The notes under the pieces were generated by a model. It searched no databases, was not told the origin of the DNA, and saw nothing but the letters and a program-made list of their open reading frames with translations. 51,114 nucleotides of DNA from Pelomyxa schiedti. Its lineage: Eukaryota > Protista > Evosea. Position numbers and translations under genes: made by a program. Where the stretch lies: NCBI GenBank assembly GCA_020536535.1, contig JAHLWZ010000574.1, forward strand, positions 1-51,114, read 5' to 3'. Of the stretch, positions 1,157-44,408 are shown piece by piece. Every line of letters begins with the position of its first letter. Position 1 is the stretch's first letter.

Positions 1157-3660
1157 GGGTATCGTGTACTAGCCAGCGTGAATACCTGCCTGGACTGCTG
1201 TTCCTTTATTGTCTCCGTCGTGTCATCAACGACCACGTGTCACTGCGTCAGCACATTCCAACGTGCCTGTCTCTGGCATTCTGTCGCGCCATCTCCTCCA
1301 CCACAAAACAAATGAGAGCACATTGCATGCGTGTGTTGAGTGACACCAGCCGACCCTCAGATAAACAAGAATGGGATGACCTTGTGTCAGAGGCATCACA
1401 GAGAGGCAACGTTGATCATGATCAACAAAAACCATCAGCGTCATCACCTGCAACAACAACAACAAATTCGTCATCATCAGCAGAACAGTCGTGGTCTTGC
1501 ATGTACTTCGTTGCTCTGTGGATGTTGTATTGCCGCCCTCCTGACAACAACCACCTGCACAATGGCCAATGTTCATATTCGCCAGCACACATATTTGCTG
1601 AAATATCAAGCAGCAATCCCGCCATTGCCGTCGCTTGTTCTGTGGGTCAGATTACATGGTGGTCCGCCTCTGTCACGTATCTGGGTGTGTGCCACAAGTA
1701 CGGTGTTGGTGGTGTGATAGCGGATGTGGACAAGGCAGTGACACTGTACCAGAGGGCAGTTGATGCTGGTGATGCTACTGCAATGTCGCACCTTGGTGTG
1801 TGCTATGAAAATGGTGTTGGTGTTATCAAGGGCATTCAGAAGGCAGTGACACTGTGGCAGAAGGCTGCTGATGCTGGTAATGCCAAGGCCATGGACAATC
1901 TTGGTCTGTGTTATGAAAATGGTGATGGTGTTGAGAAGGACATTTACAAGGCAGTGTCACTTTACCAGAGCGCTGCTGATGCTGGTAACAACAAAGCAAT
2001 GTGCAGACTTGGTGAGTTTTACTGCAGTGGTGATGAAAAGGACCTTCAGAAGGCAGTGACACTGTTTCAGAGGGCTTCTGATGCGGGTCATGCCAGGGCA
2101 ATGTGCAATTTAGGTCTGTGTTATGCCACTGGTGATGGTGTTGAGAAGGATTTTCACACAGCGGTGACACTGTTCCAGAGGGCTGCTGATGCTGGTGATT
2201 CCAAGGCGATGTGCAGTCTTGGTGTGTGTTATGAGTATGGTGATGGTGTTGACAAGGACATTCACAAGGCAGTGTCACTTTATCAGAGGGCTGCTGATGC
2301 TGGTTGTTCCGAGGCAATGTTTAACCTTGCTATGTGTTCTTACAATGGTGATGGTGTTGAGAAGGACATTCAGCAGGCTGTGACACTGTTGCAGAAGGCT
2401 GCTGATGCTGGTCATGCCCATGCAATGAACGTACTTGGTGAGTTCTATGAAGTTGGTGATGGTGTTGAGAAGGACATTCACAAGGCAGTGTCACTGTTCC
2501 TTAGGGCTTCTGATTCTGGTAATGCCACAGCAATGTTAAACCTTGCTCTGTGCTATTACAATGGTGGTGTTGAAAAGGACGTTCACCAGGCAGTGACACT
2601 GTATCAGAGGGCTGCTGATGCTGGCAATACTGAGGCAATGCTGAACCTTGGTGAGTGCTATGAAAATGGTTGCGGGGTTGAGAAGGACATTCACAAGGCT
2701 GTGTCACTGTACCAGAGGGCTGCTGATGCTGGAAATTGTGCCTCAATGTTCCATCTGGGTGTGTGTTATGGAAATGGTGATGGTGTGGACAAGGACACTC
2801 ACAAGGCTGTGTCATTGTATCAGAGGGCTGCCGATGATGGTTATGCCCAGGCAATGCTTCGCCTCGGTGTGTGTTTTCAACATGGCACTGGTGTTGACAA
2901 GGACATTTTCAAAGCAATTACACTGTACCAGAGGGCTGCTGACGCTGGAAGTACCACCGCCATGTTCAACCTTGGTGTGTGCTATTACAACGGTGATGGT
3001 GTTGACAAGGACATTCACAGGGCAGTGGCACTGTTCCAGAGGGCTGCTGATGCCGGTATAGCCGCGGCAATGGTCGACCTTGGTGTGTGTTATTACAATG
3101 GTGATGGTGTTGATCAGGACCTTCACAAGGCTGTGTCACTTTATCAGAGGGCTGTTGAAGCTGGTAATACCGAAGCAATGTACATCCTTGGTGAGTGCTA
3201 TGAAAATGGTGTTGGTGTTGACAGCGATGCCAGCAAGGCAGTTACACTTTATCAGAGGGCTGCTGATGCTGGTAATGTTGAGGCAGTGGTCAGACTTGGT
3301 GACTGTTACTACAATGGCATTGGTGTTGACAAGTACACCAGCAAGGCAGTGACACTGTACCAGAGGGCTGCTGATGCTGGTGATGCAAACGCTATGAACC
3401 TCCTGGGTTTGTGTTATCAAGGTGGTGAAGGTGTTGACAGGGACATCAACAAAGCAGTGACACTGTATCACCTGGCTGCTGAGGGTGGTAGCGCCAATGC
3501 ACTGTACAACCTTGCATACTGTCACTGGGAAGGTGTGGATTGTGTTGCCAAGGACAAACACCAGGCACATAGACTGTTGCTGAGGGCTGCTGACCTCGGT
3601 CACGTTGATGCCATTGCCCAACTCAGCATTCTGAATGGGCCAACAAACAACAACACCTGA
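1157..3660 (+). CDS. Sel1-like repeat protein, subtype C, 18 SLR units (5' exon lost in the gap)
   Basis: Acceptor aaatcaag ends at 1156, then an open frame REYLPGLLFLYCLRRVINDH... and 18 units of about 36 aa (xxxAMxxLGxCYxxGxGVxKDxxKAVxLxQRAADAG), a capping helix and TGA at 3658-3660. Confidence 0.92.
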
Positions 3661-4387
3661 TTCAGTAAGTATTTAAGCGCTTGCCAACCCAGTCAGGCTT
3701 TTGCCAGAAAACCAGGCTTCGTTTTCAGAAATGCCTCCTCATTTGTGGGTTTTGGGGGATGAAACTTGCATTTCGTTTCAATAAGTTTGGGTTTTTACGG
3801 TGTTGGCTCAGAAGAACACTGTTGGCTGTTGTTGGGTTTTATGTAATTAGCATGGAATTGTCCAAGGGGGAACATCACCACCCAAGAGCGTAAAGGAAAT
3901 TTCTGTTGGGTGAGCAGTGACTGCTTGCACCAGAGAGAAGCAAGCATTGGGCTTGAAGTACTCACAAGTGTATTGATACAGGCCAGAGGAGTGGTTGAGG
4001 GGCGCCAAAAAAGAGTTCATTGGGAGCTCAGAGGGTGTTGGTGGTGCTTCTTCACATGTAGCACGCACCCCCTCTGGTGTCATGGAGAAAAAAATACTCA
4101 ATAACCTAACGTTCACGAGAAAAGAAGATCTAGTAACGAGATCTTGTTGCGGCTGCTACCACAACAATATCCAACCGCACCAGCAGCAGCAACAGTGTAG
4201 ATTATGTGGTTGTTATGGTGGCCGATATTACGTTTTGTTTTTGCTATTCGTCAACCAAACTGTCGGCAAAATACCACCGCTGCCGCCGCTGCAACCTACC
4301 TACCGCCACATCATATATATGTAACAGGGATACATGACGCCGCTGGAGAAGGTGTATAATAGGGCCAAATCCACTCACGTCAGGTCG

Positions 4388-4729
4388 GAAAACGGCACGT
4401 GGCGTATGTGGCGGGGCGGGTGACGCCAAATTTTGTCCCTACGATAACATCATCATATCTGGAACAACGATACAATATGCAGCCCGTGCTTGAGTTGTTC
4501 TTCTGGTGNNNNNNNNNNNNNNNNNNNNNNNNNNNNNNNNNNNNNNNNNNNNNNNNNNNNNNNNNNNNNNNNNNNNNNNNNNNNNNNNNNNNNNNNNNNN
4601 NNNNNNNNGAAAACGGCACGTGGCGTATGTGGCGGGGCGGGTGACGCCAAATTTTGTCCCTACGATAACATCATCATATCTGGAACAACGATACAATATG
4701 CAGCCCGTGCTTGAGTTGTTCTTCTGGTG
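4388..4729. repeat. 121-bp exact direct repeat flanking a 100-N gap (4388-4508 = 4609-4729); probable unmerged contig overlap
   Basis: Identical sequence on both sides of the N-run at 4509-4608. Confidence 0.85.
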
Positions 4730-5734
4730 GCAACTGCAAGTACAGTACTAATCTCTGCAGTATGAGCTTTGGAATAGCATTTTGATCTCCATCTCCATTC
4801 ATTTTGATCTCCATCTCCATTCTTTACAGCATACTTCAACAACCTGGTGGCTTCACGTATGTCCCTGGGAATTTCAGAGATCCAGCTCAAGCTCCCCATC
4901 CACGTGAACCCATCAGGATCGTCTTGGTCCGGCAGCTTGACGCCAGTTCTTCTCACCTCCTTTCCCACTCTGGTAAGACAAGCCCAGCATGTACTGCCCA
5001 GTGGAATTTCCTTGAAGTGCAGCAAGCTTGAACAACCTGGCAGCTTCCATTAGGTCCTGTTTCACACCTGTACCGCCTGTGTACATCAGTCCAAGGACAA
5101 CAAGCCCGAAAGTGTCCTTTTGAGAAGCACTGAGCCGGGCAAGCCTGACAGCTTCTGCCTTGTTGACTGCAGTTCCAGTTCCTTTTTGAAGTCAGCCAGA
5201 AAAGCTTGTGCATGACTGTCACCCATCTTGGCTGCAACTCGCAACAACCTCACAGCTTCCCTTGGGTTCCTTGGAACTCCATAGCCATTGAGATAGCACA
5301 TGCCCAATCTTAAGGTTGCCATGGGAAGACCACACGAGGAAGCCTTCCATTTCAAAGCTCTTTGCAGCCATCCTGTGGTTCCTCTCCTTGACCAGCTCTT
5401 GTTGAGCAACTCCCATCAAGAAACTGCCCCAGATCCACTCATTGCTCTTTGGTTTGTTGTCACACATGGCCATTATGGATGACATCAACAACCAGTATGC
5501 CTGGGAGTTCTTGCTGGAGGCACGCTTTGCTTCCTTCATGTAGAATACACAAGGATCGTAATCAGATGGAGGGAATAAGGTTGGTAGGCTGCTGTAAAGT
5601 AGAGAAGAAAGAAGAAGGCAACAACATCAGTGATCTGTGGTGTTGTTGAAACAAGTGATCGGCAGACATTGTAGCACTCTGACCATTTGCCATTGCAATA
5701 TAGCAACACAACGTTCATTGCAGTGTCCACCCAC
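4674..5734 (-). pseudogene. Degenerate gene with Sel1-like motifs, not a member of the tandem SLR family
   Basis: SLR-like segments ATLRLGMCYLNGYGVPRNPREAVRLLRVAAKMGDSHAQ and EIPRDIREATRLLKYAVKNG; apparent frameshift near 5352 (SFE/WKASS), in-frame stops around 5050-5090, and a 22-nt tandem duplication at 4778-4821 that shifts the frame. Confidence 0.6.
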
Positions 5735-6630: not shown

Positions 6631-9227
6631 TCAGGGGTTTATGACAAAACCATACAGTTCAAACCCACTCAGTTGCAGTTCATACTCGTTGCGTGCGTTG
6701 GGTCCAGTCTCTGTGATCCTGAACTTGGAGAATGCAGCATCCTGTGTGGGAATTGGCCATGATCCAACAGCGTAGGACTTCCCACATTTGATTGTTGTGT
6801 CATTCTTGTGAGTGGACAGCACCACCCACTGCTGTTGTTGGTCGGTCCACCCCTCCAGATTCCAGTTCCTCACAGTTTGGTCAGTGTGAGAATCAGCCCT
6901 CAATGAATAGTGTGTTGGTGACACCTGGAGCCCCTTGAGGTCCACCATCCACCAGGAACCTGGTTTGCCGCTTGTGTGGTTTTGACCGCCTGACCAGAAC
7001 CGCTCCAGTACATTGGAGCTGGCCTTTGGACCATGGTATGTCTCTGAAAACTGTGTGGAAGCCAGTCCACATTTCTCAGGATTACAAAAGGAAGGTGCAA
7101 GTTCCTGTGGTGACCTCTTCTGTGTCCCAAGCCAATAAATGATCCCATTGGTGTCAAAGTCACTCTCAAACCTGAACTCCTTTGCCGAGAGGGTCTGAAA
7201 CTGCACAATGTCACTGGGTTCACTCTCCCCAACCCTGTTAATCGCAGTTACACGGAACCAATGTGAGCTGCCCCTTTCAAGAGAGTCCAATGTGGTACCC
7301 ACTTCTACTGCTTGTGTTACTTGGTGCAACTCTGTAATGTGCCATTCCACCTGTCTTTCCTGCAAATTTTTGGAAAGGGCAAATGTGTTTGAGGAACATA
7401 CATCTAGAGGAGATGAAGTACTGTGAAACAACTTGAAGGACAGGATGGGACTGGAACCACAGTTGGCAGGCGGAGAACATGCAACACATAAGCTGGTCCT
7501 TGTTGCCTTCATCAACTTGGGTTTGTCTGGTTTACTTGGAAGGTCTGTACACTGTCAATGAAATTTACGGGTTGCAGTACCCACAAACCTCCATTCACAA
7601 TGAAACCAAACGACTTGCAGGAAGCCTCAGTCTTTGATGTCTCTGTGGATGCCCCAATGTGGCTGTTCTCAATGGGCACAAATGAAAATCCACTCAACCT
7701 CTTCCACAAAGGTGAGAGTGAAGTTAAATAACATAATTCCTACCTCTAAGGCACTTTCTGTTTGTTGAAGTTGAAATGTAATCTCAAAGGGAGATTGTTG
7801 AGGAAGTGACTGAGAGGTGGAAAGGACAGCCTCAACCTTTTCCATCACAACCTCAAGTGACTGTTTTTGTTCCCCAAGGTTCTTCACTGCAGTGTAACAA
7901 GAAGATCAAATTCAAACACACAGGGAAAAGGGGGATTAAAGCACACTTTTCTCAAGTTTGATGTGTTGCGAAGCCTTGATCAGTTCATCTCTTCGTGCTT
8001 CCAACAAACTTACCATCTCTTGAGTTTTCACTGTCACTTCACTTTCAAATTTCGAGTGAATCTGAAGATTTTTTGTTTACAACTTGGAGGAATGATAGAG
8101 CAAACATACAAGGTCAACTTCTTCACCAACAGTCACAAGCGAGGAGAGGAGACCCTGAATTTTTTCTTTCACAGAGATGAGTTCATCAGTCTTCTTGCCC
8201 AATTCTTTGGGCATGGATGCCACATACTCGACCACTGGTGTGATTTTGTGTCCCTGTGGAAAAGTAAGTCACAATAGGGAGAAGATGTAGTGCTTGATGC
8301 TTTTCAGAAAAGGCACAAGATGCACAGATCAAGGACTTGTCATTCACACAATACAATTTCATTTCTTCCAAGTGTACTGGGCAGTTCGCTTTATTGATAT
8401 TAGTGGATGATAATTTCTTTGAGTTGCAACCAGAGTTTGGAAGTCCTTTCTGTGCCGCATGTGTAAGAACTGGAATCTTTTTGTGTGTCTTCAGTTTTGG
8501 TTTGTTGTGCCATTTCACCCAACACTCCTCACAAAAGATGTGTCCACAGGTCGTACAGTCTGTGTTGGGACAGTCAAGAACAAATTAGAAAGTAATTTTT
8601 GACCACAGTGGTAATCAGTGCACACCAAAGCAAATTGATGTTTTCTCACACAGAGTGCATCGCTCTGCCACAGTTAGAGAGAGGCGCCATGGTATACCAT
8701 TTATTTTCAATTGAAACGTACCTCCACAGTTTGATTGCATTTCAGAACAAAGACTTTCATTGGTCTTGAGGCAATTTGAGTTTAGGACCTTTGTCTCTGC
8801 ACTACACTTGGCACACACCAACACTGAGTGATGATTCTGCGCTCCAGTTGCCGTTGTTGTTTCTTGGTTGGTACCATAGTTACTACTACTCTTCCTTTCC
8901 TCCAGAGATTTTTGTTGGTGAGCCAATGTCCCAAACGCAACAGAGGAATCAACACATGACTTGCACATGCAATGTCCGCACTTTGTGTGTTAATGTTAAA
9001 CAATAGGTACCCACAGCCATTACGTACAAAATAAAAATACACACCTCAAGGATCATTGGTACATGAGTGTCATTATCAAAATCAAAAAGACAAGTACCGC
9101 ACCACCACACCACAACATCATCACCACCACCCTCATTGTTGGATGTTGTTGATGATACTGCCACCACTGGTACTGATGTTGTAGTGGTAGTAGTAGTAGT
9201 AGTACCTGGTTGGTTTGCGGCCGACAT
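6631..9227 (-). CDS. TRIM-like protein: RING, two B-boxes, coiled coil, fibronectin type III and a C-terminal discoidin/F5-8-like domain; multi-exon
   Basis: RING-like CGTCLFDFDNDTHVPMILE|CGHCMCKSC...CAKC; B-box-like CTTCGHIFCEECWVKWH and CPVHLEEMKLYCVNDKSLICASCAFSEKH; FN3 signature FRVTAINRVGESEPS; C-terminal FESDFDTNGIIYWLGT...WWMVDL...LSGFELYG resembles domains of HECTD1 and plant BTB proteins. Confidence 0.8.
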
Positions 9228-13176: not shown

Positions 13177-16100
13177 ATGCACGCCCACACTCAAACACAA
13201 AAACAATGTAATGAAACAACCATACCGACACCAACCACTGTTTGTATTTCTAGAGCTCCATGTGAAACTACCATAGCGACTGTAGTTGACTGCTATGTGA
13301 TTGGGGATGAACAGGCTGTGTTGGACCTGATGGATATCGTTGCCAAGCAGGATAACTTGGTTACAAGCAGTACACCGAACCACAGTCTGATCACATTAAC
13401 AATTCCTATCTCGAACAACAATCACGCTGCCGGTGAATCACTTCCACTTGCGGCCAATGGCAGAGAAACAGGCGGCGGGTGCATTCGATTGAGAATGAAA
13501 AGGACATGGAGCGCCGTTGAAGGCACTGAAAACGCTGTTGTGCTTGCAATGAGCACAGAACCTGGGGAGGATTTATGCCGAGGTTGTATAGATAAGCTGA
13601 CTCAGGTGTACGGTGAATGGACAGCAGTAGAAAACCACCGGAATACATTAGTGGTTAATTGGGGTCAGAAACCAGTTTTCCAGAAGAGTGGCTTTTCACT
13701 TCTCGCAGTAGCCTTCACGGTTTCCTACTTTTTCTCTTCGTTACATTTATTTCTTTGTGCAGATATGTGCCCACAAAATTATAAGCTGGAGCCCCAACTC
13801 CGAAACAGAATTAATGAAATTGATTGACGCGATTTTAAAAACCTCGGGAAATCGTATTTACCCTCATAGCCAATTGTCACTCATTATTCCTCAGACCACT
13901 GCATTGTGGACACAGCTACCTCAAGTCCAGAGAGCGTGCCAATTAACTCCCCATTCTTTACACCGGGGACAACAACTGTAGATATAACGGAAATGCCTGC
14001 TTCAATTGTACAAAATCTGTTGCAAATTCTACATGTAACACCTCTCGAATGGACCCAACTCAGCCAACAGGCAGAATTCAGGCGACAAGAAGGACTTCCT
14101 TTTTCGGGTGAAAGGACTAAAGTCCGTACTATGGAGAAGATAATGCGGAGATGGGTACAAGTGAAAAACTGGAGTGCAGTCCAGGAGTTAATTATGGGCA
14201 ACGCTGTGGAAAATCTGGAATTAGACCTTTCTGACTTATCATTGGACTGCGTGCCAGATCAACTGAAGGGAATTTCTTGCCGGATTCTGAATCTTCAAGG
14301 AAACAACATCACGTATCTACCACAGTGGCTCTTTCACGCACATATAGATTGGGTTTTTTTGGGTGAGACATCTCCGCTATTGTCAAAGGTGCACAAATTG
14401 ATGCGGGAAGCAGCATGGAGAAATCTGAGACACTGTCTGCTGTTTAGAGAGCCTCCTCAGCCGGTTAAACATCAGAAAATGATTCTCGTTGGTGAACCCA
14501 CGGAGGCTAAAGCTGCGTTCGTGAAATGTCTAATGGAAAAGAAGAACAAACTGGACATACAAGGAAATCTTACCACACCTCCAATCACCGTCCAAGGAGG
14601 AATCAAGTTCAGGAGAGCATCGTATATATGGACAGTGTGGAATTTAGGTATTTCTTCCTTTTATCCTATTTTCAACTCAGGAAAACCAAAAAGGTAGTAG
14701 CAGTGAACATCCATTCCACGAGTTCTTCTTTGGCAGCAGGTCAGTGTTTATTGTGTTCTTTGATTCCACCCTTCCAAAAGATGAAAACGGTGGCCCGCAG
14801 CAAAAGATCAACTTTTGGCTTGACGAAATTGCTAGATGCCAAAGGCGATATAGAGTAAGTCGCAGAGCAGGAGTACTTCTGTTCGGGTGTGGTTCTGATC
14901 AAGAGCACCCAACGTACATCCATGATCTCCTTGTTACCTGTTACTTTTCTCACATTTGGATGAACATGGACTTTCTTGGCATCGTTTCTGTCAATTATCC
15001 TTATAATGAAGGATATACATTCTATGAAAAAGGTGAACATCCAGTACGCATTAACAAGCCCATCACTAAAGTCATTGAAATGATTGAGCCTCGTGTCCCC
15101 CAAGGGCAAGATATTCCATGGCTTGTTTACCCACTTTCACCAACCTGGAAGCCACTTGAGAAGGCTCTGCGGAGGGCTAAAGAAAAAACCATGAAATGGG
15201 CTGAATTCAAGACTTTAGCAAGGCAATACGGCGTTGGAAAAAGACCAGGTTTTCCGCGTGAAACGGCCCAGACTGAGTTCAAGTTGTGCTGTGAATACTT
15301 GTCAGACTCAGGTGCCATCATCCACTTCAGGAATGACGATTGGGCGAATTCTCAATTGTACGACATTGTTATCCTGCAGCCTTCATGGTTCAACGACGTT
15401 CTGCAAGTTGTTACCGAAAATGTTCAAGAAGTGGCCTCTGAACAAGGCCTTGCCAATTTTCCTGACAAGTACCTGTGGGAGAAAATGGCAATCTGTGCAA
15501 AATCTATTTCAGGCCTTTCAGAACATCTTATGCTCACACTTGATATGATCATATTTGCGAATGGTTGCAATTATCTCTCACCTCGGTTCTTGCCTGACCC
15601 TCCAGCCTCCATCGACATCAGACTGAACAAAATTTGGGGTCAGCGTTCATTTGATCATAGCCGTGAAGTTATGAATGGGAGGGTGATAGAACTTGGGTGC
15701 CCCCGAGTACATGGGTTGATCTCCGGACTAGTAGCCATGCTGTCTCAGGTCCCTTCTGTGGGGATCAAATTCGTTTGGAAATCGGGTATACAGTTCGGAA
15801 AGTTCGCAAAGGAATTAAGCATTTCTCCACCAGCAACTATTACCCAGAATTTGTACATCTCATACCCGGGGACAACTGACACGTCACTTGACATCTACAT
15901 GCACACAATCTTCAATGAAGCATGTGATACAAAGGAACTGCGCTGGAAGAATGATATGATGGCGATTGTCATTGCGTGGTTGGAACAGTTCGCAAAGGAC
16001 AACCACCTCCCCAAATTCGTTCAATCGTTTCCGTGCCCGCACTGCTTGTGCGAGCTTGTTGAATCGGGTTCCGGGAAGAGGACCGGAAATCACTACCGTT

Positions 16101-17874
16101 CTGCTTCTGTGAACAGACCTCTGCCTGAGGGATTCCACTTCTTCAAGGTTCCGCGGGGAAAAAGCAGTTGTGAATTATATTCATTGATCACAGAAAACTC
16201 TGGGAGGGCTCACCTTGCCTGCACTCAGAGCGGAAACACATCCAAGGAGATCCTGGTGAAGCTCATTGACATTGCACCTGAGCTTTATTTAGTACTTCCC
16301 ACACCAGGTTCTTCATCACCATCCACAATAAATCCTGCTTCAGCTACACCAGCCTTCCCTGTTACCACCCACAACAAAGCGAGCACTTCCCCTAAAATTG
16401 CTGAAGGTAACCCTGCTCGCACTGAAGCAATGAAAAATAGCTCAACATTCTCTACATCAACAGCACAGATTCCAGAGCAGACAGATACTGGAATTACACT
16501 GACACTTGTATCTAGGTTGAGACAACTTCCTGAACACCCCAAAGTTGCCAAAATTGCTGGTGTCACTGCCAGGCAAGGAAGTGGTAACTATTACGTGTCA
16601 GTTGCACGTGAGGTAACTCCTTTCATCATCCCCACACACCTCCGGGAGATTCTTGGTAGTTGCGGCGTGAATCCCGGGAACGCCATTGATCTGGGTCAAT
16701 TTCTGAATAGTCTCAGTGGAAGAAAGGGAATTAGTGGTAGTTCTAATAGGGAATGCACTGAGATGCAGCGATCCAGTTCATACCTAATGGACACAGTTCT
16801 TCCTATGAACCTGCGGGTGAAGATACTGAGGGATGTAGCAGAGGGCATCAATCACCTTCACTGTCAGAATCCTCCTTTTTTCATTCAGGGCGACCTTCTT
16901 GATAACGGTTTGTTTCTTCTATTAATAATACCATTACATTAATTCCGGCACAGGGCACGTGTTAATAACATCCTTGGATGATTCCAGACCGGAACCCATG
17001 GCAAAGGTTAGTTACCGCTTTGGCCGGAAATTACTCACAAAAGTAATTAAAAAGGTATTACCTCTTGGAACATCAACCCGCCGGGGTACCATTGTACCAA
17101 AGGCAGTAGAACTCTTCAAGCAATTACCACCCAAAACTGACAGCGGAGCCAAAACCGATGTGTGGAATTTCGGTACGGGACACCAAATAAACAAACTTCC
17201 AACTTACCACGCTGCTTATATATGCAGGGATGCTAGTGCACAAGCTCATATACCCCGCCGCACCCCTGATACACATGGAAACACCCGCCGACGACGACGC
17301 GGACCAGAACCAGCAGAGCCGGCACTGGCTCCCCCTCAGGACCGCCGTAACCCCCCGCACTCTCCGGCCCGCGTTCGCGGGAGGCGGCGGGGCCACCAGG
17401 CCCCTGGTTTTGAACCGGGCCCGTGCGCCGCCGCATCCCCCCCACTGCCTCGCCCTCTCGGCCTCCCCCACTTTCCCCCCCTGCCCCAGCTCCTGCACCC
17501 GTTCCGGCTCCGGCTCCGGCACCATCCCCATTACCAGCACACCACTGTCCCCGGCCCCTCCCCAATCCCCACTGATGCAACCCACGTCCACTCCTGCTGT
17601 CACAACAACAAGTACAACCAAGACCGGGAGTGGATGCGGAGGCCTCAGCAATGTGGACGAGGGCACCGGGACTGTGCACCACCCCCAGGGAAATGGGCAT
17701 GGACATGGACATGGAGAGGTACAGGGACAAGAAGGGGGAGGGGGAGTGTGCCTGTGGTGCTGGGCCAAGCAGATAGTGACCTGCTGCTGGGTTGTCAATC
17801 CCGCCCTCAGGCCGTCAATGCGCAACATCCTGGACATATGTGACCACTTCCTCGGTCCCAATGACCACCACTAG
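13177..17874 (+). CDS. Roco-like protein (N-terminal domain, LRR, ROC, COR, kinase-like) with degenerate catalytic motifs
   Basis: LRR LDLSDLSLDCVPDQL...LNLQGNNITYLP; ROC-like KMILVGEPTEAKAA and VWNLG|SSSEHPFHEFFF (intron 14648-14693); COR-like YLSDSGAIIHF...IVILQPSWF and FPCPHC; kinase-like KILRDVAEGINHLHCQNPPFFIQGDL...SLDDSRPEPMAKV, DVWNFG|ML, CWVVNPALRPSM, resembling Dictyostelium Roco kinase segments. Confidence 0.82.
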
Positions 17875-25083: not shown

Positions 25084-25982
25084 TCACAGAGAGTACTTCA
25101 TCAGGTGCTCCCACCTGGCAACTAGCAGATCCGTGTAGTCCTTGCCCGAGAGCCCCTCGTACCTCCCAAGCGAGAACCCATCATTCACTTCCACCAAGCA
25201 CGTCGCGTGCCCCTTATCAGCCCCAAGCACCGCGAAGTCCATCGCGCACCCCACCAAATGGGCCCCCTCCTCGCTCCCAAAAAGCACCCTCACAGCCTCC
25301 CTCACGGTCCCCATGTCCAGCTGAGGCCCAGACCCGCCCTTGGGCCCAGTGTACTGGCACACGGCCCGTATCTCGCCGTTTACGAGATACACCCTGTGCT
25401 CCGCGGCCATGGTGACCAGCTCGGAGCAGTACACGGGCGTCGACGCCGGCCTCGGCTCGATCACCCCAGGCATCCCGTCCAATATCGTGTCCAGCATCTG
25501 GTCCCTCGGCTCGATAATAGCCGCGAACGCCTTGGCCTCCTCCGCCGGCTTGATAAACAACCCGGCCCTGGCCCCCTCCCCGCCCCTCCGCAGGAGCTCC
25601 CGCGCCTGCCCCAGCGTCGTGCGCCAGACCCTGCGGCGCAGGAAGGGCTCGAGGCACGCGGGGTAGTCGGGGGGCCGCGGGGGCGCGATGCCCAGCTGGG
25701 CGAGGGCCACGCGGGTCCAGTCGAAGTTGCCGACCACGAGGTCGGCGCGGGTGAGGGGCAGCCGCGTGCTGGGCCGCAGGATGTCCTCAGTGTGGCGGAT
25801 GGTGACCGGCACCCCGCGCGACGCGAGCTCGTCCGCGACCAGCTGGTAGTCGGGGGGCAGCTCCCCGCTGTCCTCGAACACCTGTATAAACGCCCTGGCT
25901 GGGAACGCCTACTAGTAGTAGTTATGGGATACTAAGAGCCGAAAAAAAAACGCGCACAACGGTTCGGCACCTTTCGTATCAT
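25084..25982 (-). CDS. ATP-grasp domain protein resembling the bacterial DUF4343/R2K clade
   Basis: PPDYPACLEPFLRRRVW, LFIKPAEEAKAF, EHRVYLVNGEI, AMDFAV, LVEVNDGFSLGRY; one large GC-rich exon plus a probable short first exon (MIRK|AFPARAFIQ). Confidence 0.75.
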
Positions 25983-34151: not shown

Positions 34152-35996
34152 ATGGGAGGCTATCTATGCTCGCCGCCGTCACCGCCCACCGGGACTGCGA
34201 GTCCTGTTGATCAAACGTGTCAAACCAACCGAATTGGGAGCCTCGTTGGTGGTGGTGACGATGAGTCCAGGCAACTACCATCAACCCAAGACCACAACAG
34301 TTTTCGCAGCACCACCTTTTCGCCTTCGAACACTGAGGGGAGCCAATCGGCCCAGGCAGCAGTCCCCATTTTTGTGGGGAGTGTGACGCACACACGAAAC
34401 GAGATGATGACGGAAGCGCTTGTGGAGTTGCAAGTGGGAAACATTGACTGTGCCATTGCTATTGTTGCCAACGCATTCTCCTTGTTTGAATCTGAGATGA
34501 TAAGTCTCAATCGTGGTGTGTCTGTGCGAATGTTTCAGATTATAGTTTCCATCTAACCCAAGAATTCAGGTGATCGTCATGATCATCAGTGTGAATACCT
34601 GCCTGGTCTGTTGTTCTTTGTTTGTCTCCGTTGTGTCATCAGCGATCACGTGTCACTTCGTGAGCACATTCCAACATGCCTGTCTCCGGCATTCTCTCGT
34701 GCCATCTCAACTTCATTCGAACCCATGAGAGCACATTGCCTGCGTGTGTTGAATGGCACCAACCTGACATCAGACCTGCAAGAAGAGCATACTTGCCACA
34801 GGAATAATAAAACGGAACTTGTTGCTGAATGGACTGACCTTGTGTCAACAGCATCATCAAGAGGTAGCATTTCTCAACAAGAATCAGAATCCACAACAAG
34901 TTCAGTAGACCAGTCGTGGTCCCTCATGTTCTTTGTGGCACTGTGGAAGTTGTATTGCTGCCCTTCAAGTTCAGAACACCAAAGTTCATGTTCAGCAGCA
35001 CACATTTTTGTTGAAATGAGCGGTGCAAAAAATATTCCACCAGCATGTTCCTTGAGGATAATTCCGTGGTATGTTGCCTCTGTCACGTTTCTGGGTGTCT
35101 GCTATGAGTTTGGTGTTGGTGGTGTTGACAAGGACATTCACAAGGCTGTGACATTGTACCAGACGGCTGTTGATGCGTCTCATGCACAGGCAATGTTCAA
35201 CCTTGGTGTGTGTTATGAAAATGGCATTGGTGTTGACAAGAATATTCACAAGGCAGTGACACTGTACCAGAGGGCTGCAGATTCTGGCCTTGCCATTGCT
35301 ATGTGCAACCTTGGCGTGTGTTATAAAAAGGGCGTTGGTGTTGACAGGGATGTTCACAAGGCAGTGTTACTGTACCAGGTGGCGTCTGATGCTGGTGATG
35401 CCCAGGCAATGTGCAACCTTGCTGTGTGTTATAAAAATGGCAGTGATGGTATTGATAAGGACATTCACAAGGCAGTGACACTGTGGCAGAGGGCTGCTGA
35501 TGCTGGTCATGTTATGGCGATCTACAACCTTGGTGTGAGTTATTACAATGGCGATGGTGTTGATACAGACCTTTGCAAGGCAGTGACACTGTACCAGAGG
35601 GCTGCTGATTATGGTAATACCTGGGCAATGTTCAACCTTGGTGTGTGTTATTTCAATGGATCTGGTGTTTTCAAAGACATTAACAAGGCAGTGAAACTGT
35701 ACCAGAGGGCTGCTGATGTTGGTCAATCCACGGCAATGTTCCACCTTGGTGTGTGTTATTACAATGGTGGTGGTGTTGAGAAGGACATCCACAAGGCACT
35801 GAGACTGTGGCAGAGGGCTGCTGATTCAGGCAGTTCCCAGGCAATGTACATGCTTGCATTACGTCACAAAAAAGGCAGTGATGGTTTTTCCAAGGACATA
35901 CACGAGGCAATGAGACTGTGGCTGTGGGCTGCTGCCCTTGGTCACCCTGAAGCCGTTGTCCAACTCAGAATTCTTCAGGCGAAAAGCAACACTTGA
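34152..35996 (+). CDS. Sel1-like repeat protein, subtype A (copy A1), 8 SLR units
   Basis: Exon 1 34152-34515 (MGGYLCS...TRNEMMTEALVELQVGNID...), intron 34516-34569, exon 2 with the CEYLPGLLF domain and 8 repeats. Confidence 0.92.
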
Positions 35997-36431: not shown

Positions 36432-36733
36432 GCACACTTGGTGTGGGTGCAATTGCCCTACTGAGAACCCTCCAACAAGTCCGTAAAATGTTAATCAATT
36501 CCTCAAAGATCAGGTTTGTTAGTGTTTGCCAGTAGGAGAAGGTGGAGACTGACTCTGTTGTTGTCCCACTCGGTAGTCCTCCGGAAGATAAAATTGCCTG
36601 GAGGCTCCCAAACTTGGTCTCAAATGATGGCCAACTTGGAGAGTATTAGGCGAATTGGAAATTTTGCGTTGATCAACAACAAGAAATGGCTTTCATACCG
36701 AGTGCCGGGAAAGCAACGACACCGTCGCCGCCC

Positions 36734-38083
36734 ACGGGTGACGAGTCTCAAAAACCTCTCTCTGAGGTATCCTTGATGCATCATTCATCTTTTTGTGTTT
36801 TTTCCTCTTTCATCAAAGAGAGACCCTGACAACAACCAAATCAGCCAACACATGCAGTTACAGGAGTCTCCACTCCATTGACGAGTGCAACTCACACAAG
36901 AAACGAGACAATGATGGAGGCACTTTTTGAGTTGCAAGTGGGAAACATCGACTCTGCCATTACTCTTGTGGCAAATGCATTCTCCCTCTTTGACTGCGAC
37001 TTGAGCTGTTCCAATCATGGTGGTGGTGTGTAAATGTGGCTTTTCTTCAGTTCGTTTTCGTCCAACCAACCACGCATCAGGTGAACCATCACTACTGTCT
37101 CATGAAGGCATGTGTGAATACCTGCCTGGTCTGTTGTTCCTTGTTTGCCTCCGTTGTGTCATCAACGACCACTTCTCACTTCATCGGCGCATTCCGCCGT
37201 GCCTGTCTCTGGTTTTCTCTCGTGCCATCTCCTCCACACCAGAAGAAATGAGAGCACATTGCATGCGTGTGTTGAGTGACACCAGCCGAACCTCGGAACA
37301 AGAATGGACTGACCTTGTGTCAACAGCATCATTGAGAGGAAACGTTGATCAGCATCACCAACAAGAATCGGCAGCAACATCAAGTTGGTCAGAAGAACAA
37401 TCGTGGTCCTTCAAGTTCTTCGTGGCCCTGTGGAAGTTGTACTGCAGCCCATCAAGTTCTTACCACCACCAAATTTCATCAGCACAGATTTTTGAAATGA
37501 GTGGTGCAACAAATCTTCCACCACCACCACAGGCATCACCACCATCATGCGCTGAAAATAACACCCTGAGGATGATCCCGTGGCGCGCTGCCTCTGTCAC
37601 ATTTCTGGGTTTCTGCTATTTCTTTGGCGTTGGTGGGGCTGACAAGGACATTCACAAGGCAGTGACACTGTACCAGCTGGCTGCCGATGCTGGTCATGCC
37701 GACGCAATGTGCAAGCTTGGCGCGCGGTATGCAAGCGGGACTGGCGTTGACAAGGACGTTCACAAAGCAGTGTCACTGCACCAGAGGGCCGCTGATGCTG
37801 GTGATACTATGGCGACCTTCTTCCTTGGTGTGTGCTACATAAATGGTGAGGGTGTAACCAAGGACGCTGGGAAGGCAGTGCTACTGTGGCTGAGGGCTTC
37901 TGTTGCCGGTAACGTCAAAGCAATGCAATACCTTGGTGTGTGTTATGCAAATGGTGATGGCTTTGACAAGGATATTCACAAGGCAGTGTCACTGTGGAAT
38001 AGGGCTGCTGATGCTGGTGATGCCAACGCAATGCTAAACCTGGGCACGTGCTATTGCCATGGCGATGGTGTTGAAAAGGACAG
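36734..38083 (+). CDS. Sel1-like repeat protein, subtype B (copy B1); start codon reads ACG; truncated by the gap
   Basis: Collinear with 40333-41660; cccacgggtgacgag here versus cccatgagtgacgag in B2; in-frame ATG ATG in exon 2; at least 4 complete repeats before the N-run. Confidence 0.8.
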
Positions 38084-38183
38084 NNNNNNNNNNNNNNNNN
38101 NNNNNNNNNNNNNNNNNNNNNNNNNNNNNNNNNNNNNNNNNNNNNNNNNNNNNNNNNNNNNNNNNNNNNNNNNNNNNNNNNNN
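38084..38183. other. Scaffold gap (100 N)
   Basis: Run of N. Confidence 1.
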
Positions 38184-38320
38184 TGCGCCACAAAAAAGGC
38201 AGTGATGGTTTTTCCAAGGACATACACGAGGCAATGAGACTGTGGCTGTGGGCTGCTGCCCTTGGTCACCCTGAAGCCGTTGTCCAACTCAGAATTCTTC
38301 AAGCGAAAAGCAACACATGA
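38184..38320 (+). CDS. 3' end of an A1-like SLR gene emerging from the gap
   Basis: RHKKGSDGFSKDIHEAMRLWLWAAALGHPEAVVQLRILQAKSNT*, near-identical to 35860-35996 rather than to the B2 3' end. Confidence 0.75.
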
Positions 38321-38521: not shown

Positions 38522-39977
38522 ATGGGAGGCTCTCTGACGGAATAAAAAAAACACCGAGACTGGGCGATGCCAACGAAAATGACAGCGTTCCGGTCTGTTG
38601 ATTATTTTATTCAGCCAGATAGCCTGTTGATCAAACGTGTCAAACCAACCGAATGGGGAGCCTCGTTGTTGGTGGTGGTGACGATGAGTCCAGGCAGCAA
38701 CGACCACCAACCCGAGACCACCACAGTTTTCGCAGCACCACCTTGTCGCTTTCGAACAATGAGGGTCAATCGGCCCGGGCACCAGTCCCCATTTTTGTGG
38801 GGAGTGTGACGCACACACGAAACGAGATGATGATGGACGCGCTTTTTGAGTTGCAAGTGGGAAACATTGACTGTGCCATTGCTATTGTTGCCAACGCATT
38901 CTCCTTGTTTGAATCTGAGATGATAAGTCTCAATCGTGGTGTGTGTGTGTGAATGTTTCAGCATTTAGTTTTGTGCAACCCAACACAAATCAGATGGTCA
39001 GTGTGAATACCTGCCTGGTCTGTTGTTCCTTGTTGGTCTCTGTTGTGTCATCAATGACCATGTTGCACTTCATGAGCACATTCCCACATTACTGTCTCCG
39101 GCATTCTCTCGTGTCATCTCCACTTCATTCGAACCCATGAGAGCACATTGCCTGCGTGTGTTGAATGAAACCAACAACGCAACATCAGACCTGCAAGAAG
39201 AGCAGACTTGCCACAACAACAATAAAACCGAAATTATTGCTGAATGGGCAGACCTTGTGTCAACAGCATCATTGAGAGGTAGAGTTGCTCAAGAACAACC
39301 ACAACGAGAATCTTCAGTAGAACAGTCGTGGTCCTTCATGTTCTTTGTGGCGCTGTGGAAGCTGTATTGCTGCCCTTCAAGTTCAGAACACCAAAGTTCA
39401 TGTTCAGCAGCACACATTCTTGTTGAAATGAGTTGGTGCAACAAATATTCCTGTCATCACTCGTTCCCTGCAGATTGTTCCGTGGTGTGCTTCCTCTGTC
39501 ACATTACTGGGTGTCGGCTATCATTTTGGCCTTGGTGGTGTTGACAAGGACATCAACAAGGCAGTAACACTGTACCAGAGGGCTGCTGATGCTGGTGACG
39601 CCACTGCAACGTGGCGCCTTGGTTGGTGTTTTTATTGCGGCCTTGGTGTTGACAAGGACATTCACAAGGCAGCTACACTGTGGCAGAGGGCTGCTGATGC
39701 TGGTGATGTGAAGGGAATGTCCAACCTCGCTGTGTGTTATTACTATGGCTATGGTGTTGAGAAGTACATTCACGAGGCCCTGAGGCTGTGGCAGAGGGCT
39801 GCTGATTCTGGCAGTACCCAGGCAATGTTCAACCTCGCATTGTATTACCAAAAAGGCGGTGATGGTCCTGCCAAGGACATCCGCGAGGCAATGAGAATGT
39901 GGCTGAGGGCTGCCAACCTCGGTCACACCGATGCCGGTGCCAAACTCAAAATTCTTCATTCAAAATGTGGTGAATAA
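38522..39977 (+). pseudogene. Sel1-like repeat gene, subtype A (copy A2), 4 SLR units, disrupted
   Basis: ATG GGA GGC TCT CTG ACG GAA TAA gives an early stop; +1 frameshift near 39433 (gaaatgagttggtgca versus gaaatgagcggtgca in A1). Confidence 0.75.
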
Positions 39978-40332
39978 AGTAATCAGAGGACTGTAGAACT
40001 GACTGTATTTTTCGTTCTCTCACTTCCACATTTCCAGATAGGCGGACTCTCTCCATAGGTCAATTGCCCTATAATAAAACCAAAACAGCGGTTTACAACG
40101 GTTGTTTGTTAAATTGCCGAACTGACTGCTGGTTCTCAGAAATGAAACAAGGGAGATTCGTTGGAGTGTTTCCCAGGCGAAGGTGGGGACTCTGTTGTTG
40201 CCGTCTTCGAGTTTGGAGGCTCCCAAACTTGGTTCCAATTGGTGGCCAACTTGGAGACTATTAGGCGAATTTGAGTTTTTCAAAAGATCAACGGCCTTCA
40301 TACCAAGTACCGGGAAAGCAACGACACCGCCC

Positions 40333-42099
40333 ATGAGTGACGAGTCTCAAAAACCTCTCTCTGAGGTATAGATCTCCTGACCTTCGCATCATTCATCTTT
40401 TTGTGTTTGTGTTTTTTCCTCTTTCATCAAAGAGCCTGACAACCAAATCAGCCAACACATGCAGTGACAGGAGTCTCCACTCCATTGACGAGTGCAACTC
40501 GCACAAGAAACGAGACAATGATGGAGGCACTTTTTGAGTTGCAAGTGGGAAACATCGACTCTGCCATTGCTCTCGTTGCAAATGCATTCTCCCTCTTTGA
40601 CTGCGACTTGAGCTGTTCCAATCATGGTGGTGGTGTGTAAATGTGGCTTTTCTTCAGTTCGTTTTCTTCCAACCAACCACAAATCAGAAGGCCACTGTGA
40701 ATACCTGCCTGGTCTGTTGTTCCTTGTTTGCCTCCGTTGTGTCATCAACGACCACTTCTCGCTTCATCGGCACATTCCATCCTGTCTCTCACTGGCATTC
40801 TCTCGTGCCATCTCCTCCACATCAGAGGAAATGAGAGCACATTGCATGCGTGTGTTGAGTGACACCAGCCGAACCTCGGAACAAGAATGGATTGACCTTG
40901 TGTCAACAGCATCATTGAGAGGACACGTTGATCAGCATCACCAACAACAAGAATCGGCAGATACATCAAGTTGGTCAGAAGAACAATCGTGGTGCTTCAA
41001 GTTCTTCGTTGCCCTGTGGAAGTTGTACTGCAGCCCATCAAGTTCCGACCACCACCAAATTTCATCAGCACAGATTTTTGAAATGAGTGGTGCAACAAAT
41101 CTTCCACCACCACCAGCACCACCATCATGCGCTGAAAATAACACCCTGAGGATGATCCCGTGGCGTGCTGCCTCTGTCACATTTCTGGGTTTCTGCTATT
41201 TCTTTGGTGTTGGTGGTGTTGAGCAGGATATTCACAAGGCAGTGACATTGTACCAGCTGGCTGCCGATGCTGGTCATGCCGACGCAATGTGTAAGCTTGG
41301 CGCGCGGTATTCAAGCGGAACTGGTGTTGACAAGGACGTTCACAAAGCAGTGTCACTGCACCAGAGGGCCGCTGATGCTGGTGATACTATGGCGACCTTC
41401 TTCCTTGGTGTGTGCTACATAAATGGTGACGGTGTAACCAAGGACGCTGGCAAGGCAGTGTCACTGTGGTTAAGGGCTTCTGTTGCCGGTAACGTCAAAG
41501 CAATGCAATACCTTGGTGTGTGTTATGCAAATGGTGATGGCGTTGACAAGGATATTCACAAGGCAGTGTCACTGTGGAATAGGGCTGCTGATGCTGGTGA
41601 TGCCAACGCAATGCTAAACCTGGGCACGTGCTATTGCCATGGCGATGGTGTTGAAAAGGACAGTAACATGAAAGCGGAACTGTGGAAGAGAGCTGCCGAT
41701 GCTGGTAATGTAGGCGCAATGTCCAACCTTGGTTGGTGCTACTTCACTGGCGACGGCGTTGACAAGGACATCCCCAAGGCATATACACTGTTCCAGAGGG
41801 CCGCTGATGCTGGCGATGCCGAGGCAATATTAGGCCTGGGTGCATGTTATTACAATGGAGATTGCGTGCAGAAGGACCGCCACAAGGCACTGAGGCTGTG
41901 GCAGAGGGCTGCTTATGACGGAAGCGCCGAGGCAATGTGCAACATTGCGCACTGTTACCAACGAGGCAAGGAGGGTTTTCCCAAGGACATACACGAGGCA
42001 ATGAGATTGTGGCTGTGGGCTGCTGACCTCGGCCACCCTACTGCCATTTCCCAACTCAGAATTCTCCAGCTGAGAAGCAAGAGGGGTAACCACTACTAG
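40333..42099 (+). CDS. Sel1-like repeat protein, subtype B (copy B2), complete, 3 exons, 8 SLR units
   Basis: MSDESQKPLSE (40333-40365), intron to 40451, PTHAVTG...CSNH, intron to 40687, EGHCEYLPG... and 8 repeats, TAG. Confidence 0.92.
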
Positions 42100-42192: not shown

Positions 42193-44408
42193 TCACTGGT
42201 CAAGACAAGCAGGAGCACCACTGGGCAGTGTTGTTTTGTGCTTGTTGTATCTCCATACAATGAGGCAAAATACGGCCATAACTACAATTGTGATTCCAGC
42301 CAGAACAAATGACATGGTGGACTGTGTGAGTGGAAGTAGGGCCAATAGGGCTGTGATGAGGTTGCCCAGGGCTATGGTGGCCAGCCATATGGCTGTTATG
42401 AATCCCCGCATCGTTTTGGGTGATTCGGTGTAAGCGAATTCATAAGCGGTGACACTGAGAAGAATTTCGGCCATGGAGATTAGTATGTACTGCGGCAGTA
42501 TCAGAAGCACAGATATGGGCTCCTCCGGGTTGTTCTCCATGGCTATTTGAACAAGTCCGGCAACGCAGCTGGCAATGCAGGTTACTACAAAGCCGCTGAT
42601 CATCTTGCGGAGGGGAGTAACCGCAATGCGGATGTAGGTGAGTGCTGGATACAATAGTTGATCAAACAGCGGAATGAGAACTATGTCCGCTAGATTGTTT
42701 AGACAACCAACTTCGGCATAGGGAAGTGTCCAGTTCCCAAAGGTGCAATCCATATCTGTGATATCGTTAAAATATTGCGAGAGTATCGGTGGGGTACCTG
42801 CAGCTTGAAATACCCAGAGTGAACTGATCTGGAAGAATACTCCCCAGAAAAAAGGCATCACAAGAAATACCGACAGCACGTTCAGTGCGGATTTAACATC
42901 TTCAACTTTACTGCCGTCATATTCTTGTTTTGCTGCGTCCAAACAGCTTCTATTCCTTCCCTTTAGGCAGCATAATCTCCAACTGCACTTTGCTTTTTTG
43001 AAGGCGGCAACAAACACCTTCCATACAACCACATAAGTGCCACGAGTAGGAGGCTCCTTCTTCAGATTTCTAGAAGGCAGGAAGAAGATAGGTACAGCGA
43101 TCATAAAAACCACTAAAGCTGTCATGAAGGCACACCATGGTTGCAGGGCATCAAGCAAAAGCGGAAGTAAAATGGCAGCCGGCAATCCTCCGACTTGTAC
43201 TGCAAGATAATACCAGCTGTACGCAGAAGATCGTTGCTTTGTTTGAGTTGGATGAAACTGGTCACCGACAAGGGCACTCAAAGATGGTCCCATCACTCCC
43301 GCAAGGGACAGGCACAAAAACCCTATGGTGATTATTACGGTCTACAATGAATGAACATTGCCTACCAGCTATGGAAACGATGAGCATTGCTGTGCCTTCT
43401 GCGCCAAATAAACCTTAAAGGAGAATTAGTAACCTGGAATGGGCAGAAGGAAAGTGAGAGGCGAAAATGAAAAACTCACACAACTGGCTGCAAATAACGC
43501 GAGAGTAGATAGTAGCATAATCATGCACCCCACAGAGATAACACTAAAGTGACCCGCAAAAGTATCCGCAGAAGCACCGCCAATTAGACCTGATCCATAT
43601 GTAAGAGCCAGAGCAGTATTAGTAAATGCACTGGCCTGGAAAATAACGATATTAATGCTAATGCCCAAGCAGCAGAAAAGATAAAAAAAAAGGTAAAAAG
43701 GTAAAAAACGCACACCTGAGACTCTGAAAGTCCAAGCCAATCCTTAAAGTACACAGCTGTTATGGAGGACACGCCGCTCTGGCAGAAATTCCTACCTACA
43801 GCGAGGGCGAGTATTGTCCACAGCCACCTGTGGTGCCGCCACGCCCCGAACGGCGGCGCCGTCGCCTCCGCAGCCTCCCCGTCGTACCTGCCGATGCAGC
43901 TGCTGCTCCCAGTGCGCCCCCGCCCGCCCCCAGCCGCCCCGCTCCCCGTCCCGACGACTACGACAGCCGCCGACGGCGACATCCTGATTCCCCTGCTCCC
44001 TCTCCCGCCCCCGCCCCCGCAGTCCTTTTTCTTCCCGCTTTTTCTTCTGCCACCACCACCGGCACCGCCACCACCTCCTCCACCTCCTCCTGCGTCGTCC
44101 TCATCGTCATCGTCGTTGTCAAGTTGTTCGTCGTAGTCGTCGTCGTCATCATCGTTTTGGTTTTCGTTTTCGTTGTCGGCGGCGTCGTCGTCGGCGGCGG
44201 CGCTTGCGACGAGGGCGGCTACTTCGTCGTCGTGTTCGGGGCGCGCTACGACGTAGTCGCCGGGGGGCGGGCCGGCGTCGGGCGGCTGTTGTTGGTTGGG
44301 CGGCGTCCTGATTCTTCGGTTATTCTTAACCGACAACGCCGCCGTTGTCGTGCCCCACGAACCGCCACCGATCTCGTACGTCGCGCCGTCCTTGTTGTTG
44401 AGATCCAT
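42193..44408 (-). CDS. POT/PTR2-family (SLC15-like) transporter; multi-exon, acidic and Gly-rich N-terminus
   Basis: GGASADTFAGHF, LVGDQF, YSWYYLAVQVG, PFFWGVFFQ.SSLWVFQA, TPLRKMISG, PQYILISMAEILLSVTAYEFAYTESPKTMRG. Confidence 0.9.

Follow-up and report, generated by a model that had tools for sequence, protein, structure and literature searches.

A species-restricted Sel1-repeat gene family with a variable predicted binding face in Pelomyxa schiedti

Proteins built from Sel1-like repeats (SLRs) are scaffolds for protein–protein interactions. Bacterial HcpC, LpnE, LceB and an Oxalobacter Sel1 protein, as well as eukaryotic SEL1L/Hrd3, share the same repeat (PF08238) and the same superhelical two-helix fold. 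In Helicobacter pylori, the slr (Hcp) family comprises nine secreted proteins that, analysed across strains, gave lineage-specific ratios of nonsynonymous to synonymous substitution (ω) well above 1, with fast residues on exposed surfaces that were read as the tuning of interaction specificity (PMC1941758). The WD40, ankyrin (ANK) and tetratricopeptide (TPR) repeats of fungal NOD-like receptors (NLRs) such as HNWD show >85% identity over ≥100 amino acids, evolve in concert and are joined to NOD/STAND NTPases; for TPRs, helix A is stated to line the concave binding surface (PMC4986451). In Rhizophagus irregularis, high-copy Sel1-like and kinase families lie next to transposons and have been suggested to take part in perceiving the environment (PMC8647823). 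Here we analyse a Sel1-repeat gene of Pelomyxa schiedti at positions 1237–3660 of contig JAHLWZ010000574.1 (the target gene), together with its relatives in the 51,114-nucleotide (nt) stretch that was analysed as a whole (the window) and in the remaining assembly. With a probability of roughly 0.6, we read it as a member of a young Pelomyxa family of adaptors or regulators with a variable surface. A family of this kind is not known to have been described in Archamoebae: the literature library that was searched has no paper with both Pelomyxa and Sel1, and the P. schiedti genome paper does not mention Sel1 (PMC8887013).

The target open reading frame (ORF; 1237–3660) lies in a frame that is open from 1015 and stays open through all 18 repeat units, which thus form a single uninterrupted ORF and are not separate exons. 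A search against the Pfam Sel1 model (PF08238) recovered 18 stretches with a total of 605 bits (gathering cut-off, 30.7; E = 1.2e-188), and Tandem Repeats Finder detected a 108-nt period (16.5 copies at 1730–3505, 73% matches, score 1513), confirming the 18-unit Sel1 array of the initial annotation. The gene and its surroundings are organized as follows.

1018–1117, no strand: assembly gap (a run of 100 N), which takes away the target’s upstream exon and the 3′ portion of the paralog next to it
1183–1608, forward: orphan helical head domain in front of the Sel1 array, with conservation across 29 aligned paralogs
1669–1713, forward: degenerate first half-unit (SVTYLGVCHKYGVGG), the start of the solenoid and one of the 18 Pfam stretches
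1714–3540, forward: sixteen consecutive Sel1 units, mostly of 36 codons (one of 34, one of 35)
3541–3660, forward: divergent cap unit at the C terminus (..KDKHQAHRLLLRAADLGHVDAIAQL..), followed by the tail and stop codon; the same cap type ends the paralogs

Nucleotide identity among the sixteen units is 65–84% (58–69% for the last one), no pair exceeds 84%, and amino acid identity averages 62% (range, 50–75%). On the reverse strand, ORFs of 104–163 amino acids run through the array (1226–3621); these are expected from a stop-free, compositionally biased repeat, and nothing suggests that they are genes.

An AlphaFold (AF2) model of six target units (2569–3216) had a mean predicted local distance difference test (pLDDT) score of 95.5 and shows two antiparallel helices per unit with superhelical stacking, as in the Sel1 fold. 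When the modelled units were searched with Foldseek, the Oxalobacter structure 6ok3 matched at a template modelling (TM) score of 0.93 (E = 3e-15), and the SLR matches 6ok3, LpnE, LceB and HcpC spanned TM scores of 0.80–0.93 at 32–37% identity; SEL1L was also matched. When the V of GV(D/E)KD is taken as column 1 of a unit frame, the helices occupy columns 5–17 and 21–33. The latter, although second in this frame, is equivalent to helix A, which comes first in the Pfam Sel1 model. Column entropies were calculated from 168 clean 36-codon units (40 ORFs, 26 contig segments). Columns 20, 21, 22, 25, 26, 29, 32, 33 and 35 are the most variable, columns 2, 5, 6, 10 and 12 are intermediate and the others are nearly fixed. 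The hypervariable positions proposed from the single array are therefore borne out by the entropies, and the residue pairs listed after the AM motif are present. Their assignment to helix A also holds: in the predicted structure, columns 22, 25/26, 29 and 32/33 are spaced as i, i+3/4, i+7, which places them on one face of helix 21–33 in the SLR solenoid, and columns 23, 24, 27, 28, 30 and 31 form its conserved packing face. From what is established for TPR and SLR solenoids, the variable face would line the concave groove.

The window contains six further copies of this gene type.

2–1017, forward: neighbouring paralog with upstream exon (2–187), short intron, head and first units, cut by the gap at 1018–1117 (tblastn of P0004, ORF listing)
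34305–35996, forward: paralog with 8–9 units (Pfam, ORFs, tblastn)
36686–38317, forward: paralog KAH3760949.1 (P0004), interrupted by a gap at 38084–38183 (tblastn, annotation)
38797–39974, forward: frameshifted copy with a head ORF (39023–39544) and a 4-unit ORF in a different frame (39432–39974; ORFs, tblastn)
40294–42099, forward: paralog with 8 units (Pfam, ORFs, tblastn)
44529–46054, reverse: paralog with 8 units (Pfam, ORFs, tblastn)

In the annotated model KAH3760949.1 (P0004), which corresponds to the window gene at 36686–38317, a short upstream exon (…TRNETMMEALFELQVGNIDSA…) is spliced onto the ORF. Searching with P0004 (tblastn) placed this exon before every window paralog except the target, in which the match begins at 1180, just past the gap at 1018–1117. 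The assembly gap thus deprives the target gene of its 5′ end, and the raw ORFs take their Met codons (‘MVVVCKCGF…’) from within the intron. The paralogs share a head domain, as had been noted, but this is not their true N terminus, given the further exon in front of it. Likewise, among the unit counts of 18, 8, 8, 7 and 4 given for the paralogs, the first three hold, but ‘7’ and ‘4’ are in part artefacts: the copy at 37005–38234 is cut by the gap at 38084–38183 and that at 39023–39974 is frameshifted; a further copy, at 165–1017, is cut by the gap at 1018–1117. For the frameshifted copy (38797–39974), the choice is between a probable pseudogene and an assembly error. The heads of the copies starting at 40294 and 36686 are 94% identical at the nucleotide level, and the reverse-strand paralog (44529–46054) has a 96.6% identical copy on a 1.5-kb contig (C2437).

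The head (roughly 140 residues; YLPGLLFL.CLR.VINDH ... MRAHCMRVL ... EW.DLVS ... EQSWSCMYFVALW.LYC ... AHIF.E.S) has no Pfam match, its weak structural model has no Foldseek match in the pdb at E ≤ 0.001, and the ESM Atlas returned for it only features of ≤0.82, which we regard as noise. An F-box, suggested by the LPxLL start, was rejected, as none of 29 heads matched a Pfam F-box at E values up to 10 and the weak model gave no Foldseek match. A head-only profile searched against 1.84 billion representative proteins retrieved just 27 clusters, and all ten that were looked up were from P. schiedti. In at least 10 of the 27 clusters, a protein kinase domain (Pkinase, PF00069) lies upstream, with the head about 230 residues behind the kinase and before the Sel1 units. 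Some of these kinase–head–Sel1 proteins add a C-terminal domain, as in P0008, P0011 and P0013 on other P. schiedti contigs, in which the module is joined to ADP-ribosylglycohydrolase, GNAT acetyltransferase, or F-box plus ankyrin; for some of the long multi-domain models, prediction may have fused or merged separate neighbouring genes. The genome holds at least 81 head-domain matches and, by a first-look count, at least 2,004 candidate Sel1 units. Family members carry 2 to 18 units, and many copies lie on short contigs.

In their order of kinase, helical linker and SLR arm, the longer Pelomyxa relatives resemble eEF2 kinase, structures of which appear among the fold matches (ranks 31–48). However, eEF2 kinase is a single-copy alpha-kinase, whereas there are dozens of the Pelomyxa kinases, with matches to Pkinase (PF00069), and the window genes have no kinase. 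The intergenic spacers in the window (roughly 0.3–0.7 kb) leave no room for one, so that the window genes are stand-alone versions of the arm of the kinase family. By eye, no signal peptide or membrane segment is recognizable in the models or ORFs, and the proteins are therefore probably cytosolic.

The conserved blocks seen in the array, at synonymous sites as well, are real at the DNA level. The window has 37 occurrences of the 21-mer CAGAGGGCTGCTGATGCTGGT at ≤3 mismatches (0.01 expected), 15 of these inside the target array, and 22 occurrences of a 37-mer block (0 expected). Codons in the units are position-specific, with alanine encoded by GCA at columns 8 (108/132) and 23 (99/122) and by GCT at columns 15 (108/133) and 16 (104/112), valine by GTT at column 1 (119/131) and by GTG at column 9 (100/112), and leucine by CTG at column 11 and CTT at column 27. 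Nine other window ORFs have almost no codon bias (codon heterozygosity of 0.74–0.80 in four- and six-fold families). Since background genes are unbiased and one amino acid uses different codons in different columns, codon bias was ruled out as the cause, and the column-specific codons reflect shared ancestry. Diversity at four-fold degenerate sites is 0.33 in scaffold, 0.40 in variable and 0.22 in intermediate columns; it is 0.29 between units of the same ORF, 0.33 between units of different ORFs and 0.35 between the heads of 29 paralogs. Selection or conversion acting on the DNA of the conserved blocks specifically was also rejected, because four-fold diversity is similar across column classes and equal to that of the head. 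With the synonymous divergence of units (0.33) equal to that of heads (0.35), the DNA conservation reflects young age and not special homogenization; the blocks are no more conserved than the head domains of the paralogs, and the idea of a specially homogenized scaffold falls away. In the simplest reading, a single recent burst multiplied both units and genes, and neither selection on DNA nor continuing homogenization is needed.

We then consider whether the exposed positions diversify. Crude per-column estimates of synonymous divergence (NG86 pS) were noisy at two-fold codons and were replaced by four-fold sites, maximum-likelihood (ML) codon models and a parsimony count. GY94/MG94 models on a fixed unit tree put ω at 1.25–1.59 in the nine variable columns, at 0.88 in the intermediate columns and at 0.20–0.28 in the scaffold, and these classes held under five frequency/model variants and two trees. 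The fold is thus clearly under purifying selection. The initial annotation had proposed that the helix-A positions diversify and that the array belongs to a recombination-shuffled, modular recognition repertoire. In full, this alternative holds that the family is an adaptive set of variable receptors, with diversifying selection on helix A and reshuffling by recombination or conversion directed against prey, pathogens or endosymbionts, and signalling through the kinase-fused relatives. Several results agree with it. Fixing the variable columns at ω = 1 worsened the fit by 6.8 log-likelihood units, so that neutrality is nominally rejected (2ΔlnL = 13.5); in a SLAC-like parsimony count, nonsynonymous changes were in excess at column 29 (P = 0.014 to 6e-7) and column 10 (P ≈ 0.006), both with P < 0.02, and nonsynonymous rates relative to the global synonymous rate were highest at columns 22 and 32; and non-degenerate diversity at the variable columns (0.45–0.51) exceeds four-fold diversity (0.33). 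However, in 22 independent reciprocal nearest unit pairs the variable columns had an ω of 1.14 with a bootstrap interval that includes 1 (0.78–1.55; scaffold, 0.33 (0.23–0.45)), paralog pairs picked by head similarity alone gave 0.45–1.0, and the likelihood-ratio tests are inflated by recombination. We read this as exposed variable positions that change at the neutral rate or somewhat faster, with diversifying selection perhaps acting on a few columns; the excess of ω over 1 is modest and does not appear in the independent pairs.

Shuffling was assessed in the same units, within a single assembly for which the public runs are short contigs of one study and in which cross-mapping of paralogs dominates differences and joints. 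The nearest relative of 150 of the 168 units lies in another ORF. Where the nearest unit is ≥90% identical (43 units), 35 match another ORF, 24 of them at the same ordinal position, and 8 match the same ORF, 4 of them as adjacent units. Single-unit insertions separate close paralogs, as in the C747/C1000/C1977 group, whose members have 11, 12 and 13 units. Some pairs are mosaic, for example C747_689 and C490_51, with the head and unit 1 93–97% identical and the other units 73–83% identical (four-fold differences of 0.10 and 0.24, respectively; P = 0.02). With nearest units mostly in other ORFs and few within the same gene, the family has grown mainly by whole-gene duplication; turnover and exchange of units are real but minor, and this is not a regime of constant reshuffling. 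Of the proposed recombination-shuffled modular array, the large modular family, some intragenic duplications and mosaic pairs remain, but there is no excess homogenization. Also in favour of a receptor repertoire are the fusions to kinase, ADP-ribosylglycohydrolase, GNAT and F-box/ankyrin domains, and the three endosymbionts of the host (PMC10579272); the equal synonymous divergence of units and heads, without sign of ongoing homogenization, and an internal identity of 62%, too low for the fungal repeat class with high internal conservation (HIC), count against it. Overall, the case for a positively selected receptor system under active shuffling is weak to moderate, and we consider that explanation unlikely.

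The Pelomyxa family shares with fungal NLR repeats a conserved scaffold, few variable positions on a predicted binding surface, varying repeat number and a proposed role in recognition. The analogy to HNWD and other HIC repeats nevertheless fails on identity (a mean of 62% at the amino acid level as opposed to >85%), on concerted evolution (four-fold diversities of 0.29, 0.33 and 0.35 within ORFs, between ORFs and in heads; 150 of 168 nearest units elsewhere) and on NOD/STAND domains, as neither the window genes nor 18 longer relatives gave a NACHT or NB-ARC match. The parallel drawn with brown-algal TPR and leucine-rich repeat receptors does not hold either: one ORF encodes all 18 units, with no exon per repeat, and no Roc, COR or NB-ARC domain occurs in the Sel1 family (the COR-A match at 14744–16939 belongs to a separate gene). 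The H. pylori slr proteins are similarly SLR paralogs with fast residues on exposed surfaces (PMC1941758), but the Pelomyxa family is eukaryotic, probably intracellular, known from paralogs only and has an ω of about 1–1.6. A lineage-specific, high-copy expansion of Sel1-like and kinase genes in a microbe with intimate biotic partners is found in Rhizophagus irregularis as well (PMC8647823); that organism is a fungus of an unrelated lineage, and the Pelomyxa head was not found outside P. schiedti. Unlike ordinary SLR proteins, the Pelomyxa proteins have far more uniform units, column-specific codons, arrays of up to 18 units and an orphan head, with at least 80 genes in one species. The fold and the repeat are thus those of an ordinary SLR protein; the Pelomyxa genes are a young lineage-specific expansion with a variable predicted binding face and an orphan head common to a kinase family.

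On this basis, we propose that the target is a 5′-gap-truncated member of a young multigene family specific to P. schiedti, whose members consist of a short upstream exon, the orphan helical head, 2–18 Sel1 units and a conserved cap. The head-plus-Sel1 module is the C-terminal (sensor) arm of many Pelomyxa protein kinases, and the window genes are that arm alone. The products are most likely protein-binding adaptors or regulators with a ligand surface that differs from copy to copy. All units would derive from one recent ancestral unit, which explains why scaffold codons are still shared. Packing residues are kept by selection (ω of about 0.2–0.3), and the exposed face of the helix at columns 21–33, like the loop that follows, changes at the neutral rate or slightly faster. 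Growth of the family is mainly by whole-gene duplication, with some gain, loss and duplication of units and occasional exchange between paralogs. The data show the anatomy, the fold, transcription, the restriction to one species, the kinase link and the rate classes; binding, a cytosolic location and diversified specificity are inferred from them. Several points weigh against this proposal. Only about 40 of the at least 81 family genes were sampled for the unit analyses; the all-helical AF2 model of the head, built with 29 paralogs, is weak (pLDDT, 56); 108-nt unit trees in the presence of recombination make the likelihood-ratio test anticonservative; the RNA evidence consists of assembled contigs from single-cell libraries of one study, possibly with DNA; and one window copy is frameshifted, so that part of the family may be decaying.

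The last point also bears on a neutral expansion, in which a redundant, possibly decaying high-copy family would drift at its exposed positions at an ω of about 1 without ligand-driven diversification, much as has been proposed for the Rhizophagus Sel1-like and kinase genes. The ω of about 1 in recent pairs, the fairly relaxed head domain (pN/pS, 0.26–0.71), the frameshifted copy at 38797–39974 and the many copies on short contigs would all fit. However, a scaffold ω of 0.2–0.3 and intact long ORFs in most copies indicate that the fold is maintained, RNA-library contigs are present, ML estimates of ω exceed 1, and the same module is kept in many kinase architectures; we regard neutral expansion as quite unlikely. 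Similarly doubtful, and going further than our preferred reading of a young adaptor or regulator family, is the idea that the amoeba has an undescribed system of innate recognition in which the head-plus-Sel1 module acts as the variable sensor. By analogy, dozens of kinase-fused and stand-alone copies might each bind their own intracellular ligand through the helix-A face, in a logic like that of NLR or receptor-kinase repertoires but assembled from Sel1 repeats and PINK1-like kinases. The ligands could, for example, be proteins from the three endosymbionts, from prey or from parasites; a receptor role in sensing them is speculation.

The single-cell assembly was built from seven amplified cells (52.4 Mb, 5,337 scaffolds; PMC8887013) and comprises 52,367,397 bases in 5,337 contigs as analysed here. 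Logan contigs from DNA runs reproduce 1118–1887, 1907–2193, 2471–3106 and 3357–4316 without differences. Two single-cell RNA libraries yielded exact contigs over 2468–3273 and 3357–3703, with 2703–3273 spanned exactly across several unit boundaries; no RNA-library contigs were found for the flank at 4088–4400, though DNA runs cover it. These data support transcription of the target gene and a sound assembly of the array. An assembly or multiple displacement amplification chimera of shorter paralogs is very improbable: the genome stems from seven amplified cells, gaps lie beside the gene and many contigs cross-map with spurious joints at 90% likeness, but DNA-run contigs reproduce most of the array exactly, RNA contigs cross the unit boundaries of 2703–3273, units only 65–84% identical can be resolved by short reads, and the frame is open through all 18 units. 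Within the length-variable low-complexity linker of the head, RNA contigs (X3 and X4) skip 141 nt with GT..AG ends (joint 1339–1481), and DNA contigs show a similar 137-nt skip in this region; the joint could be paralog cross-mapping or an optional intron.

Other genes of the window were recorded alongside the Sel1 cluster. Short reverse-strand ORFs at 4660–5539, beside a gap at 4509–4608, encode divergent Sel1-like units (for example, LRLGMCYLNGYGVPRNPREAVRLL) of a different Sel1 lineage. A large forward ORF at 13906–16942 with a COR-A match (PF16095, E = 1e-9) indicates that a Roco-type gene adjoins the cluster. An intact reverse-strand ORF of 265 amino acids (25084–25881) matches R2K-clade ATP-grasp domains (PF18299, E = 7e-25; also PF14243) and lies in a locally GC-rich stretch (0.55 versus about 0.45). 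Also on the reverse strand are a POT/PTR2 peptide transporter exon at 42193–43317 (PF00854, E = 6e-54) and an ORF at 6631–7515 with weak fn3 and F5/8 type C matches; with these two ordinary eukaryotic neighbours, the contig is amoebal and not from a symbiont.

Recognition repertoires have repeatedly arisen through lineage-specific expansion of repeat proteins whose binding faces vary. In P. schiedti, about 2,000 Sel1 units and an orphan head present in dozens of kinases are among the largest gene-family features of a 52-Mb genome. If ligands are found, the family would be a tractable case of how specificity is built in a free-living protist; if there are none, it would be a clean example of a young repeat expansion with a surface that evolves close to neutrality.

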